A stretch of DNA of 64,000 bases from the NCBI RefSeq assembly GCF_033153115.1, contig NW_026889794.1, positions 6,324,001 through 6,388,000 of the forward strand, given 5' to 3'. The notes beneath the pieces were generated by a model, which searched no databases, had not been told where the DNA came from, and saw nothing but the letters and a program-made list of their open reading frames with translations. Shown here one piece after another: positions 21,297 through 38,593 of the stretch; position 1 is the first letter of the stretch; the number at the start of each line of letters is the position of its first letter. Position numbers and translations under genes: made by a program. The stretch comes from Saccostrea echinata (taxonomy: Eukaryota).

Positions 21297-21600
21297 CACA
21301 GGAGTCGGCAATTTTGTCAATAAATTGAAAATAAATGATAAACAGGCATGAATCCTACCAGTGAGCTTCGCGAGCGTAGCGAGCGAAGCGACAGGATGGC
21401 AACGAGTTTTCTTGATTTTCTCTAATTCGCTATCCAACCAACATCAAACACCAGATATCAACTCCGTAGTATCTATTAATCAATTCCTGACATTTTTTAC
21501 CATTCAACTACCCTACACTATCATTTTAATCACACTTCTTCACATCTAGTTTACAACCAGCGGCCATTGACAATTCTGCGTGACGTCACATTCACTGCAG
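21297..21600 (+). repeat. Left TIR (~300 bp)
   Basis: Near-identical reverse complement of 38290-38593, with only a handful of mismatches seen. Confidence 0.95.
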
Positions 21601-21634
21601 ATCGAACTATTCGGAACACGTATTAACGAAATGA

Positions 21635-21780
21635 AAAAGGTCGAAATATTCCGAAAAGATGGCTGAAAACATCCAAAGTAGCATGGAAATGCAGGATCTT
21701 CGAGAAAAGGTCGAAATATTCCGAAAAGATGGCTGAAAACATCCAAAGCAGCATGGAAATGCAGGATCTTCGAGAAAAGG
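21635..21780 (+). repeat. 70-bp tandem duplication covering the helicase start codon
   Basis: TCGAAATATTCCGAAAAGATGGCTG...CTTCGAGAAAAGG occurs at 21641 and 21711. Confidence 0.9.
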
Positions 21781-21965
21781 CTTACCATAAAGCATTAGAA
21801 GGGCATAGTTTTATAATAACGGGCCAATGTGGAACTGGAAAAACCTACTTATTGAGGTAATTCAGTAATAACACACAATTCTTTGAATATATATATAGGG
21901 TTGTTTATTTTAAGTTTCTGTCGACATTTTCCCGCGAAAAGTCAAACCACTAATATTGTACTTGA

Positions 21966-22095
21966 NNNNNNNNNNNNNNNNNNNNNNNNNNNNNNNNNNN
22001 NNNNNNNNNNNNNNNNNNNNNNNNNNNNNNNNNNNNNNNNNNNNNNNNNNNNNNNNNNNNNNNNNNNNNNNNNNNNNNNNNNNNNNNNNNNNNNN
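21966..22095. other. Assembly gap (130 N)
   Basis: Run of N. Confidence 1.
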
Positions 22096-22299
22096 ATGAA
22101 AAGTTTATTTTAAAACTTTTATGCAAAATGGTTCAGCAAACAACTTTTTTGTAAATAAAAAGATGCTCAGAAATCTGATAAAAACATTTGAGTGAGGTAG
22201 TTTTTTTTTTGTCACTTACCAGAGGGAAAACAAATATTTTTCAAAGTTGTCTTAGTACTATAGTCTCCTTACCTTTAGTTTATAAACGAATCTCTCTTC

Positions 22300-34475: not shown

Positions 34476-34611
34476 TAACTTTGTTGCTATAAATAGAAAT
34501 GGAAATCCTCATTGATTTTGTGTATTTCAGTTATAAATAGAACTGGAAGTCCTCACTGTTTTTTGCGCTTGTCAGTTAATGGTAACTTGTACATGTACTT
34601 GTTAGTCTTAT

Positions 34612-35212
34612 TATGGATATTTTACTAGAAAAAGACTTTAATGGTAACCGAACAACAAAGCTTTATGATAAACGTGATGACTTCAATTTTTCAATCGTCA
34701 ACTTCCCTTACTTATGTAGCAATATACCCTTATCAACTGCATATGGGGTTTTTGTCTCCCAGTTGACTCGATACGCAAGAACATGATCTACGTATGAACA
34801 ATTTTTAAAACGAGGCAAGCTATTGACAAACAAGTTGATGAAACAAGGATATCAACAATCTCGTTTGAAGTCATCATTTGGCAAGTTTTATGGTCGGTAC
34901 AATGACCTTGTCAGCAAATACAACCTATCAGTAAGTCAAATGCTGACTGACGTTTTTCATACTAATTGTTAGGAAATTTTTTACACACTGAATTGTCTAC
35001 GGATTTTTCCGGGTTTTTTTTTTTGTTTTTGTTTTTTGATCATCACAAGGAGCACACAGCGGGTGTGATCGGTCGGCAGGGGATGCTCACTCCTCCATGG
35101 CAACTTATTCCACCTCTGATGTTTTTGGAGGTCCGTGTTTGCTCTGCTTCCGATTTGTATTGTCTAAATGGACTTCAAGCTTGAATACTGTTCGTTATCT
35201 CCATATTTCATT
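34612..35212 (+). pseudogene. Naiad-type PLE 3' fragment (RT thumb, stop, conserved 3' region)
   Basis: DILLEKD..G..TTKLYDKRDDFNFSIVNFPYLCSNIP...AYGVFVSQL.RYAR...LTNKLMKQGYQQSRLKSSFGKFYGRY...DVFHTNC*. No C-terminal GIY-YIG. Confidence 0.85.
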
Positions 35213-37099
35213 TCGTTTTCACCATTCAGTTAGTCAGCAAATTTTCCATCCATGATATCTCAAATAGTGCGAATTTACATAATACAGCATCTATTTTTAG
35301 ACAACTGTAGCTAAAAAAAAGAATTGTGAGCTACCTTCAATAATACATGTATGTAAAGTGTTGTATAAACAACTGTTCCTGTTATTATTGAAGTATTGTA
35401 GATAGCAATATGTTTGTAAAAATTTTTAATGAAGCTTCCAGTATGTGGAAAATTTTTATTTTACCTCATATACTAAGACGTATTTAAGTTTTTATTTTTT
35501 GTGCTAAAAATAGAAATGGGAATCCCCTTGAAACATTTTGCATTTCAGTCAGTGGTTTCTAGTACTTGTCAGTCACATAATGTTTATAATAGAGAGTATT
35601 CAAATTTTCAATCCATAATGTCTGAAATAGTGCAAGAATCTATATTTTCTAAATAACTCACTGCATCTATTTTTAGACAACTGTTGCTATAAAAAGAAAA
35701 GAGAGTCCATCTTCAATATTGTGTCAATTATTAATTACCCCAATGTTCTTGTTCATGACATACTGTAGACAGCAGTATATTTTGTGAATACTTTTTCAAT
35801 GACGCTTACAACTGGTGGAAAATTGTAATTTTTCCTCATATGCTGAGATGTTTCTATTTATGGGTGTTTGTGCTAAAAATAGAAAAGGGAACCCCCTTCA
35901 AATAGTGTGTATTTCAGTAAATGGTTTCTAGTACTTGTCAGTCGCACTGGGTTTATAACAGTTAGTCTGCATTTTTTCCATCCAACATTGCCTGAAAAAG
36001 TGCAAGAATCTACATTTTCTCGATAATTCGAGAAATCTATTTTTAGACCATTGTTGCTATAAAAAGAAACAAGAGTCAATCCTCAATATTGTATCAATTA
36101 TTGTACAAACACATTTTCTTTTTGAAGGCATATTGTAGAAAGCTTAATATTTGTTAAGACTTTTTCTATGAAGCTTCCAATTAGCATAAAACTGTCATTT
36201 TTCCCAATATTCAGAGACATATCTATATTTAGGTGCTTGATACTATAAATAGAAATGGGAATCCCCCTCAACCATTGTCCACTCCAGCTAGTGGTGTCCA
36301 GCTACTCTCATTAACATCTTAAATTTTGCAATATACTTCCTAATTATCCAGCAATGACATCTAAAACTTTGCCAAAATTTGATTTTTTACATTTTTCTAA
36401 AATAAATCTATTTATAGATACATGTTACTAAAAATAGGATTAAAAGCCCACCGATATTTTTTCATGAGATGACACTACTAATTCTCCAGTATAAAAATAC
36501 ACATAAGATTTGGAAATTTTCCACGGACAATTTTTGTTATTTAGCCTTAAAGATCTCAAAAAATACTAAATTCCCCATTTTTCAAATTTTAAGAATCCAT
36601 GTCAGTTTGCAGGACCTTTTTCTTAGAATAGGAATATTTGTAGAATAAATGATGATATGCCCTGTGTACCTTAAAAGTTCATGTTATCATATGATCCAAT
36701 GATTTTTGTTTGAGTATATTAGACACCGATAAATATTTGTTTACATTTCCTCAATTTTCAAGTTTTCATTTGGTCAAAAATGGCCAAAAATGGCCAAATT
36801 CAATGGATCCGTCTCCATGGCAACCGAGTGCACGTGTGGAACTTCCGACTCCATATTTGCTAGTTTTGTACCAAGACACACCTGTTGTGCAAATTTCATC
36901 AAAATCCGAGTCATGTCATTTCCAAGCCCTATAGTAAATTTGTTGGTGCTTACAGAGAATGCATGTTAAAAATGTATAAAAGAGTAGACATTGTTCTGAA
37001 GTATTTTTATTTTTATTGTGCATACGGTATGTGTGTATGTGTAATTTTTTTTTAATCTATATGACATTGCACTTAACACCACATTTTTTTTATTTTTAG

Positions 37100-37939
37100 T
37101 AGTGTTGTCAGCGAGTACCTGGTTAACCGGGTAACCATCGAACGATGCGAGTATCGTTTAGTAAAACTGCTACTCGGTTACTCGGATATATAAAATTTTA
37201 CATGTTAACATGTTTAAATCAGCAGGAAAAAATGTAATTTTGTTTTTAAATTTCTTTGTTTTATTTACCGTTAATTAAAGATACACCCGACCTAGCGTTT
37301 TACAAATACAATCAATTTGTTTTGATAAGTATTTAACAGTTTAACTAATTGGAGGCTTTCATTGCCAAAGGGTTTACAAGTTTTGAAGGCTTGAGTTAAC
37401 TATAATTACTTCACACAAATCTGTGCTAATCTGTAGTACAAGATTAAAGAGGACGCCGCCATATCCATCAAAATAATATTAAAATCATGACTGAATTTAA
37501 ATCCGTAAGGTTTAAAATATTTGCAATGGATTTAACATATACGGGTGGGACAACAAATATGCTGAACCACCTAAGATTGGAATTTAACTCTGAAACAAGC
37601 GAAATATTATATAGGATATTCCGGAAAACAGCAAGCTATAACGGGATGTTCGAGAAAAAAATTATTTATAAGATATTTAATACTGTGAGTTTGTAATTAA
37701 GAATGAAGTTCATGAGCAGTGCATTTGTGTTTTATATATACCGGTATACAAATGATAAATTTATATAGAAATGGTAACGACGTTACATATACAAAATGTA
37801 TTTCAGGTACCATTGAACATATATACCGCGTAAAAGGATGATTTGAGATCTAAAGAAAAACCATCCGAGTAACTGGTTACTCGATCGGAAAAGTAAGCGA
37901 TTAACCGGTTACTAAAACTCGTCCGATTTGACAACACTA
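37100..37939 (+). mobile_element. Deleted hAT element with a BED-finger remnant
   Basis: TIR TAGTGTTGTCA, 8-bp TSD ATTTTTAG (37092 and 37940), and remnant LTYTGGTTNMLNHL. Confidence 0.88.
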
Positions 37940-38289
37940 ATTTTTAGGCAATATCAACATTTCGGTTCTCTTTTAATGTGTTTTCAGCATTATTAAGTAA
38001 TTTTAAAAAAGCCACTTACTAAACAGAAGCTCCAAAGTTGCTGGACATCTTAAATTGTCTTGAATAAGCTATTCGAAACGATTTTCAATATCTGTTTTCA
38101 AATTTCCCGCAAACGAAAGTACATGATTATCTCCCATTCTTTTTGAATAAGCATATTCCAGTTTTTCTTAAGGGATAGAGTTGGTTAATGTTTTTTGGTT
38201 ATTTGAACATTAAAAATAAAGAAAACCACAATGCATTGGTAAATATTTTTTTTAATAACATGTGTATCAATTTGATGAATTAATATTTT

Positions 38290-38593
38290 CTGCGGTGTAT
38301 GTGACGTCACGCAGAATTGTCAATGGCCGCTGGTTGTAAACTAGATGTGAAGAAGTGTGATTAAAATGATAGTGTAGGGTAGTTGAATGGTAAAAAATGT
38401 CAGGAATTAATTAATGGACACTACGGAGTTGATATCTGGTGTCTGATGTTGGTTGGATAGCGAATTAGAGAAAATCAAGAAAACTCGTTGCCATCCTGTC
38501 GCTTCGCTCGCTACGCTCGCGAAGCTCACTGGTAGGATTCATGCCTGTTTATCATTTATTTTCAATTTATTGACAAAATTGCCGACTCCTGTG
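38290..38593 (-). repeat. Right TIR (~300 bp)
   Basis: Reverse complement of 21297-21600. Confidence 0.95.

Follow-up and report, generated by a model that had tools for sequence, protein, structure and literature searches.

The DNA considered here is a stretch of 64,000 nucleotides from Saccostrea echinata (assembly GCF_033153115.1, contig NW_026889794.1, positions 6,324,001 to 6,388,000), hereafter the window, in which an earlier note had marked positions 21297 to 38593 as a P-element-type transposon carrying its own PIF1 helicase. The marked segment belongs to a lineage of P-superfamily DNA transposons that always encodes two co-evolving proteins, a P-type transposase and a PIF1 helicase protein. 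The helicase partner is a protein of ~1,050 aa that starts with an N-terminal PIF1 helicase of superfamily 1B (SF1B), continues through an all-helical middle domain and a SAP-like motif, and ends, after a basic linker, in a PHD finger. The copy in the window is itself dead: both of its genes have stops, frameshifts and deletions, two foreign blocks have entered it, and the tail of the helicase protein is gone, so that this copy can no longer perform any of the functions proposed below. The pairing of the two genes that the earlier note described stands; what it had missed is that the window copy is defective in both of them. Taken as a whole, the observations are probably best explained if the window holds a decayed copy of an autonomous two-gene P lineage whose helicase docks by a module that resembles the C-terminal domain (CTD) of the P transposase.

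The window copy is bounded by terminal inverted repeats (TIRs) of 305 nt, located by an inverted-repeat search at 21297-21601 and 38289-38593 and 98% complementary to each other, and both open with CACAGGAGTCGG. Directly outside each end stands CTTTATC, a target site duplication (TSD) of 7 bp in which the match stops short of 8 bp; repeats of about 300 bp and a 7-bp duplication had been reported in the earlier note. The left TIR has 48 matches in the 923-Mb genome; some belong to two other long paired copies, others to short derivatives without coding content that range from 175 bp to 2.9 kb. Perfect TSDs of 7 bp (8 bp in one) flank at least six more independent insertions of the window family, short non-coding derivatives among them. 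The ends and coding parts of the window copy, with the other family copies referred to by the labels C1, C29 and so on, are as follows.

21290 to 21296, no strand: left TSD CTTTATC, with the identical 7 bases at 38594-38600
21297 to 21601, plus strand: left TIR, 305 bp, starting CACAGGAGTCGG, with 98% complementarity to the right arm and 48 matches elsewhere in the genome
21729 to 21856, plus strand: helicase exon 1, from the Met to Walker A (GQCGTGKT), donor AG/GTAATT; the equivalents in sister elements C8 and C4 splice in frame to exon 2
22380 to 24650, minus strand: remnant of the P-type transposase, antisense inside helicase intron 1, with in-frame stops and frame changes
25856 to 25949, plus strand: helicase exon 2, first part, motif Ia VTAVITTTGMAS; acceptor position tentative in the window family
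28663 to 28864, plus strand: helicase exon 2, second part, Walker B LIIDEISML and start of motif III, donor CAG/GTATGT at 28864/28865
29112 to 29230, plus strand: helicase exon 3, motif III GDF..QLPPV, with a frameshift in the window copy
29231 to 29337, plus strand: intron of 107 nt, GT..AG, spliced out in a public contig
29338 to 29560 (end approximate), plus strand: helicase exon 4, with a frameshift in the window copy; contig cover 29336-29436
29934 to 30590, plus strand: helicase exon 5, 2B domain, motifs IV-VI, Pif1_2B at 3.7e-5, codons for IPVLLAFAL gone; contig cover 30088-30482
30540 to 30966, plus strand: start of the middle domain, up to LAKLRYLAGACIQKV, truncated at 30966; the window copy lacks the remainder of the domain and the PHD finger
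38289 to 38593, minus strand: right TIR, from the inverted-repeat search
38594 to 38600, no strand: right TSD CTTTATC, the same as the left

The helicase opens at an in-frame ATG at 21729. The distance to this codon from the inner edge of the left TIR is 128 bp, close to the ~130 bp given in the earlier note. Its plus-strand exons, read there as a multi-exon gene of PIF1 type from Walker A to motif VI, match Pfam PIF1 and Pif1_2B as well as solved PIF1 structures at 1e-18; these exons were searched one at a time. The splice from exon 1 to exon 2 of the window family had no in-frame placement on the decayed copy, and is clean in the sister elements C8 and C4, where the exon 1 donor (AG/GT) and the exon 2 acceptor join in frame. 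Contigs from public sequencing runs guessed to be RNA were aligned to 28600-31000, and their cover is confined to exons. In one contig a segment of 107 nt bounded by GT..AG is absent where exons 3 and 4 meet; the joint connects 29228 with 29336 (cut +2), and its shorter side has 101 bases, with 0-1 mismatches. Another stops exactly at the exon 2 donor, 28864, and its other end continues into 25920-25949, the form that lacks the nested element described further on. These contigs fit a spliced transcript from a copy or allele without the nested insertion.

The minus-strand frames at 22380-24650 bear GSLIIDEM and NSDIVENLFGQQR and match the Pfam Tnp_P_element helix-turn-helix (HTH) profile at 6.7e-4, in agreement with the P-family transposase that the earlier note had named. 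Compared with C29 and C1, two long copies of the same family, the window transposase is without ~310 bp at ~22957, where the region of the second catalytic Asp sits; the matching N-terminal part in C1 is one open frame of 334 aa. TNP-like_RNaseH_N (PF21787) scored 3e-8 on a paralogous window-family copy and 1.8e-12 to 2.7e-9 on intact sisters. When a profile of three intact transposases was compared with solved structures, the single significant match was the Drosophila P transposase 6p5a (2.8e-5), aligned over two collinear stretches. These span the HTH region and the latter half of the RNase H fold, the catalytic glutamate motif among them, and the alignment contains SRLNQDIVEHFFG. A single window-family transposase piece searched against the PDB had no match, and ESM Atlas, queried with the transposase, again returned only 'P transposase'.

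Across the aligned transposases the D, D and E motifs are conserved, an insertion of ~240 aa separates the second Asp from the Glu, and the N-terminal stretch is rich in Cys. The insertion domain that binds guanosine triphosphate (GTP), PF21788, scores above the cut-off in the relatives P0045 and P0050 and weakly (0.0034) in the Mytilus edulis partner, and was not detected in the copies of this genome. The transposases stop ~65 residues past the catalytic Glu motif, where the aligned Drosophila protein has more than 200 residues, and a helical CTD was not detected on any of them. Taken together, the matches identify the transposase as an RNase-H-fold enzyme of the Asp-Asp-Glu (DDE) class and of P/THAP9 type.

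Both genes are present, in the same order, in the long window-family copies C29 (10.8 kb) and C1 (18.7 kb). The three long copies are 5-8% apart, which indicates that the window family is old, and C29 and C1 are broken at other places than the window copy. Beyond the family we read five sister elements, each with its own TIRs, a TSD of 7-8 bp and both genes; ~20 further paired loci, together with C51 and C3, were left out of this reading.

C25, 7.5 kb: TIRs of 282 bp, 99.3% alike, TSD AGTGTTGC
C81, 7.2 kb: TIRs of 527 bp, 99.2% alike, TSD GTCTATTA at the outer ends of a tandem pair
C9, 8.7 kb: TIRs of ~313 bp, 94% alike, TSD GCCGAAAC
C8, 10.4 kb: TIRs of 339 bp, 99.7% alike, TSD ATTTAGAG
C4, 14 kb: TIRs of ~300 bp, 94% alike, TSD ATGAAAG

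All element ends start with CAYRGG, and TIR length ranges from 280 to 530 bp across members. The TSDs are of 7 bp in the window copy, C29, C4, C12 and two C54 insertions, and of 8 bp in C25, C8, C9, at the outer ends of C81 and in one short derivative. C25 and C81 have intact genes without introns, with open frames of 1,107 and 804-808 codons in convergent orientation. The window family shares another layout with C4, C8 and C9: one TIR is adjoined by the first exon or exons of the helicase, and the transposase is antisense within the intron that follows. The earlier note had rightly enclosed both genes within the TIRs; it had missed the antisense nesting in intron 1, the two foreign blocks and the PHD tail. 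At C81:2008000-2027999 two intact elements that are 99.93% identical follow each other in tandem, with a period of 7,477 bp and 227 bp of left flank in each unit, and the 8-bp TSD is shared by the outer ends only; the pair reflects either a segmental duplication in tandem or an artefact of assembly.

The two genes keep company well beyond these elements. A helicase or middle-domain match lies within 12 kb of 28 of the 47 transposase loci in this genome, against ~0.12 expected by chance, and the unpaired loci are fragments or distant P-like genes of 23-27% identity. Two such distant loci without a helicase, C51 and C3, have open frames of ~900 aa. Maximum-likelihood trees of seven pairs, one built on the helicase middle domain and the other on the C-terminal half of the transposase, gave the same topology, ((C8,(window family,C4)),(C81,C9,(C25,M. 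edulis))), with main splits at 100/100. Proteins of different elements are 18-40% identical, and the pairing is therefore old. In the M. edulis pair the helicase protein is CAG2207257.1 and the P-type transposase is CAG2207258.1; the two accession numbers are consecutive, and both proteins come from a single 3.05-Mb contig.

Full-length relatives with the PIF1-middle-PHD order were found in Mytilus trossulus, M. edulis, M. coruscus and Tegillarca granosa. The middle domain, searched alone as a profile, matched 1,404 representative proteins, and those named come from the scallops Pecten maximus and Argopecten irradians, mussels, the ark clam and the acorn worms Ptychodera flava and Glandiceps talaboti. 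The transposase has relatives in Mytilus, Pinctada, Haliotis and Ptychodera. The distinct P lineage with a dedicated helicase that the earlier note had put forward is thus borne out by the two long family copies and the five diverged sisters, all of which carry the helicase, and by the co-occurrence and co-phylogeny that it had singled out as checks. A full-text search of the literature turned up no published P-type element that carries a PIF1 helicase, Repbase and Dfam lying outside that comparison. The architecture of the partner protein, the CTD-like fold on a helicase and a transposase without a CTD are new here.

In copy C29, 2.2 kb of the element is kept 3' of the helicase, with a frame of 341 codons followed by a PHD finger (Pfam 8.5e-9). 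At other loci of the genome the helicase, the middle frame and the PHD finger form a single open frame of 1,107 codons, with the frame of 804-808 codons adjoining it. Pfam gave PIF1 (2.7e-36), Pif1_2B and PHD on the long protein and the P-type RNase H N-terminal domain on its neighbour; in bits, PF05970 scored 125.7 (cut-off 25.9) and PF21530 scored 40.7. The helicase domain begins within 35-75 codons of the start of the open frame, and its alignment shows Walker A, DEISM and GDFFQLPPV, with FDQIEYICRNI located between motifs II and III. Its top matches among solved structures are human and yeast PIF1, with human PIF1 at 1.9e-32 versus 1.6e-14 for Helraiser. Profile and motif matches accordingly identify in the helicase a PIF1-family SF1B core with a 2B domain and the conserved motifs. 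The earlier note was right to call the partner a PIF1 helicase; it is not a bare helicase but a multi-domain protein with a CTD-like domain, a SAP-like motif and a PHD finger.

For the middle domain, a first model of 441 aa with a predicted local distance difference test (pLDDT) score of 78.9 had as its top match among 48,161 PDB representatives residues 617-734 of 6p5a chain B, at Z 9.9. The 211-residue core was refolded on an alignment of 60 sequences, which gave a pLDDT of 92.6 and a predicted template modelling score (pTM) of 0.87. In an unbiased structural search of 48,161 PDB representative chains, the only match of this core at Z>=8 was 6p5a_B 617-734, with Z 10.1, a root-mean-square deviation of 2.8 Å, 118 of 118 residues aligned and 15% identity; the runner-up structure reached Z 6.4. 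The C-terminal domain of P transposase is entirely alpha-helical (PMC7776569). As modelled, the ~200-residue core of the middle domain superposes on the Drosophila P transposase CTD, and we regard this likeness as strong, though short of conclusive.

A SAP-like motif, which matches the Ku70 SAP domain at 2e-4, follows the CTD-like core and precedes the PHD finger. The closest solved relatives of the PHD finger are those of ALFIN-like, DIDO, BPTF, TAF3, PHF2/8 and MLL, all of which are readers of histone H3 lysine 4 (H3K4) methylation, and at the level of sequence the PHD finger of the element resembles these H3K4-methylation readers. In the subclade of C25 and Mytilus (L051:1899-5219, P0001-P0010) the zinc-binding His of the PHD finger is replaced by Asn or Asp; C81 and one Tegillarca relative have the His.

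P transposase is a single multi-domain protein that requires GTP and makes a 17-nt staggered cut, and its CTD in the Drosophila complex touches the single-stranded transposon end (PMC7776569). We propose that the CTD-like module would dock the helicase protein into the transpososome at the place where the missing CTD would sit. This docking site would be the path of the single-stranded transposon end, and would put a 5'-to-3' motor on that strand. The motor may then melt the long staggered cut, or may release or remodel the complex, while the SAP-like motif and the PHD finger may tether the complex to DNA and chromatin. A possible role of the helicase at the long staggered ends, suggested in the earlier note, gains indirect support because the helicase bears a fold like that of the P transposase CTD, which touches the single-stranded end. 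The fullest form of the proposal, a split P transposase with its CTD placed on a PIF1 helicase with a PHD finger and with the helicase as an obligatory subunit of the transpososome, is one we put forward tentatively, as a real possibility short of an even chance.

Several results weigh against the reading of a two-gene P lineage with a docked helicase. The likeness to the CTD lies in predicted structure alone, and a Z near 10 can arise by chance for helical domains. Foldseek matched neither middle-domain model to the PDB, and Pfam had no match for the middle domain with either a single sequence or the 60 members. Sequence profiles of the middle domain, compared with the PDB, returned PIF1, PHD fingers and a SAP domain only, never 6p5a, and ESM Atlas likewise held no usable match for this domain. 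On the transposases, Pfam gave no THAP domain at E up to 1, a departure from the classic P element. Outside this genome, the evidence that the two genes are adjacent is a single gene pair from a single species, known solely from its accessions and contig. The transcript evidence comes from four small public runs of one study, which contain parts of the helicase and are RNA by guess only, no run with a helicase match being on record as RNA. Both the binding of the two proteins and the requirement of the helicase for transposition are steps that we infer.

A different account is that the helicase-PHD protein is a co-evolving passenger that acts outside the transpososome, in template-directed repair of the donor gap, by which the element would be copied back, or in steering or protecting the element in chromatin, and that the CTD likeness is a coincidence of helical packing. 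According to a preprint (10.1101/554550), Drosophila PIF1 promotes processive synthesis in double-strand gap repair. The link between the middle domain and the P CTD is structural only, Foldseek and the sequence searches being without it, and a complex prediction for the transposase core and the middle domain, with a score of 0.00 and an uncertain fold for the partner, gives no verdict. We nevertheless consider this account rather unlikely: the P CTD is the single outlier of the unbiased structural search, aligned over its full length, and the partner transposase is missing exactly that domain, a module that a repair helper would not need.

The helicase might instead belong to a Helitron or Helentron that sits inside a P element or is fused to one. 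Transposon-borne helicases of PIF1 type are typical of Helitrons, and numerous PIF1-like open frames in this genome, 1,400-2,900 aa long, probably represent Helitrons. This origin is nonetheless highly improbable, as none of the reading frames in eight elements has a Rep/HUH domain, intact members measure no more than 7.2-7.5 kb and amount to two genes between TIRs with TSDs, and the helicase scores nearer to cellular PIF1 than to Helraiser. The elements share with Helitron and Helentron Rep-Hel proteins a transposon-borne PIF1-family SF1B helicase (the Helraiser match of 1.6e-14), but here there is no HUH Rep and the helicase is not fused to a DNA-cleaving enzyme. They also have symmetric long TIRs and TSDs of 7-8 bp, in contrast to the asymmetric ends without a TSD of Helitrons; the TIRs and TSDs therefore point to a mechanism of cut-and-paste type and not to a rolling circle. 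Helitron identity was rejected, with no Rep or Helitron_like_N on any frame and with TIRs and TSDs present. The earlier note had likewise seen no Rep domain, and neither a Rep domain nor termini belonging to the helicase itself came to light on the reading frames scanned. PIF1-like frames of 1,400-2,900 codons on many contigs are 32-42% identical to the element helicase over the motif region and are unlinked to P-type transposase matches.

That a P element captured a host PIF1 gene a single time and gave rise to a few copies has next to no probability, for although three long window-family copies only 5-8% apart would alone fit such a capture, the pairing recurs among lineages 18-40% identical with matching gene trees and in another bivalve, M. 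edulis, and the genome-wide check for a near-copy of host PIF1 found nothing near-identical, the best matches outside the element families being at most 42% identical.

The two-gene P lineage can be set beside several known systems. P elements normally encode a single transposase. The likeness to Drosophila P and THAP9 lies in the collinear transposase match with HTH, split RNase H and Glu motif, in the Pfam TNP-like RNase H domain, in the GTP-binding model found in relatives, and in TSDs of 7-8 bp with inverted-repeat ends. Unlike them, the present elements have two genes in place of one, no THAP domain detected, no CTD on the transposase and a CTD-like fold on the second protein; their TIRs are of 280-530 bp versus 31 bp in Drosophila P, and part of the lineage has the nested antisense layout.

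RAG-like elements have convergently oriented RAG1-like and RAG2-like genes, as described in PMC7204232. Like these ProtoRAG/Transib-related elements, the present ones are two-gene cut-and-paste elements, and the genes of C25 and C81 are also convergent; the transposase families are unrelated, and the partner here is a helicase and not a kelch-repeat protein. RAG-like elements make 5-bp TSDs, unlike the 7-8 bp here, and vertebrate RAG2 has a PHD finger. AcademH, which belongs to Academ, is a eukaryotic lineage of TIR transposons with a helicase gene, with another transposase superfamily, a helicase of RecQ type and shorter TSDs; the likeness is that of a TIR element carrying a helicase gene, and by its description AcademH is set apart by having RecQ and not PIF1. 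To our knowledge, no eukaryotic DDE transposon has been reported to depend on a helicase that it encodes itself. In bacteria, IS21 with IstB and Tn7 with TnsC combine a DDE-type transposase with a separately encoded, nucleotide-driven partner (PMC11208146). Any likeness to these would be one of possible working and not of ancestry, as the bacterial partners are AAA+ regulators versus an SF1B helicase here and have no domain known to be shared with the transposase.

The remaining parts of the window copy are non-coding, duplicated or foreign.

21637 to 21776, plus strand: tandem duplication of 70 bp, two units, spanning the helicase start codon; 69 of 70 bases identical at offset 70, single unit in copy C29
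21966 to 22095, no strand: assembly gap in non-coding spacer, with flanks collinear in paralogues
25950 to 28662, no strand: non-coding element nested in helicase exon 2, which it interrupts; its ends are inverted and it has a TA duplication; absent from C29 and C1, and a public contig joins 25949 to 28663
30967 to 36965, no strand: foreign 6-kb block with inverted arms of ~1.5 kb (31037-32513 and 35450-36926), found as inverted-repeat pairs; absent from C29 and C1
36966 to 38288, no strand: right sub-terminal non-coding part of the element, which aligns with C29 and C1

Of the two ATGs created by the 70-bp duplication, only the second (21729) is in frame with Walker A. The assembly gap lies between the end of helicase exon 1 (21856) and the transposase stop codon (22377-22379) and is crossed by no reading frame; its flanks are collinear with two paralogous copies, in which ~58-75 bp separate the matched flanks. 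In C29 the spacer equivalent to window positions 21858-22285 consists of a ~346-bp unit in three tandem repeats, and the window gap falls in the same stretch, so that the tandem repeat may be the cause of the gap.

The nested 2.7-kb element at 25950-28662 has subterminal tandem repeats and contains no long reading frame, and one contig corresponds to its empty site. In the public runs its ends reach high depth and adjoin many different flanks, so that it belongs to a multi-copy family. The 6-kb block at 30967-36965 stands in place of the 2.2 kb of element that C29 has kept. Its arms are 95-99% alike around a centre of 2.9 kb, as in a foldback-like element or a rearrangement; it contains no long reading frame, and its small frames had no Pfam match. 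Copy C1 (C1:14648725-14668000) has a nested block of its own, ~4.5 kb long and absent from C29, with minus-strand open frames of 313, 619 and 395 codons that resemble, by eye, a retroelement polyprotein. In the flanks of the window copy (20392-21296 and 38570-39000) small minus-strand frames resemble fragments of retroelement integrase by eye, and the element may have landed in an older repeat; a Pfam scan of three flank reading frames gave no match.

The data suggest a widespread sister lineage of P in bivalves and acorn worms, in which a shortened transposase is paired with a PIF1 helicase that bears a fold like the missing tail. The hundreds of mollusc proteins named 'PIF1' or 'uncharacterized' that match the middle domain are probably transposon genes and not host helicases. 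The lineage would offer a handle on three questions, namely the function of the CTD, whether unwinding of the ends is a limiting step, and in what way a chromatin reader might direct integration. Several sister copies have intact genes and TIRs more than 99% alike, and are thus candidates for ordinary transposition assays. If the proposal is true, these elements would be a natural system for learning how the staggered P-type cut opens and how insertion sites are chosen.

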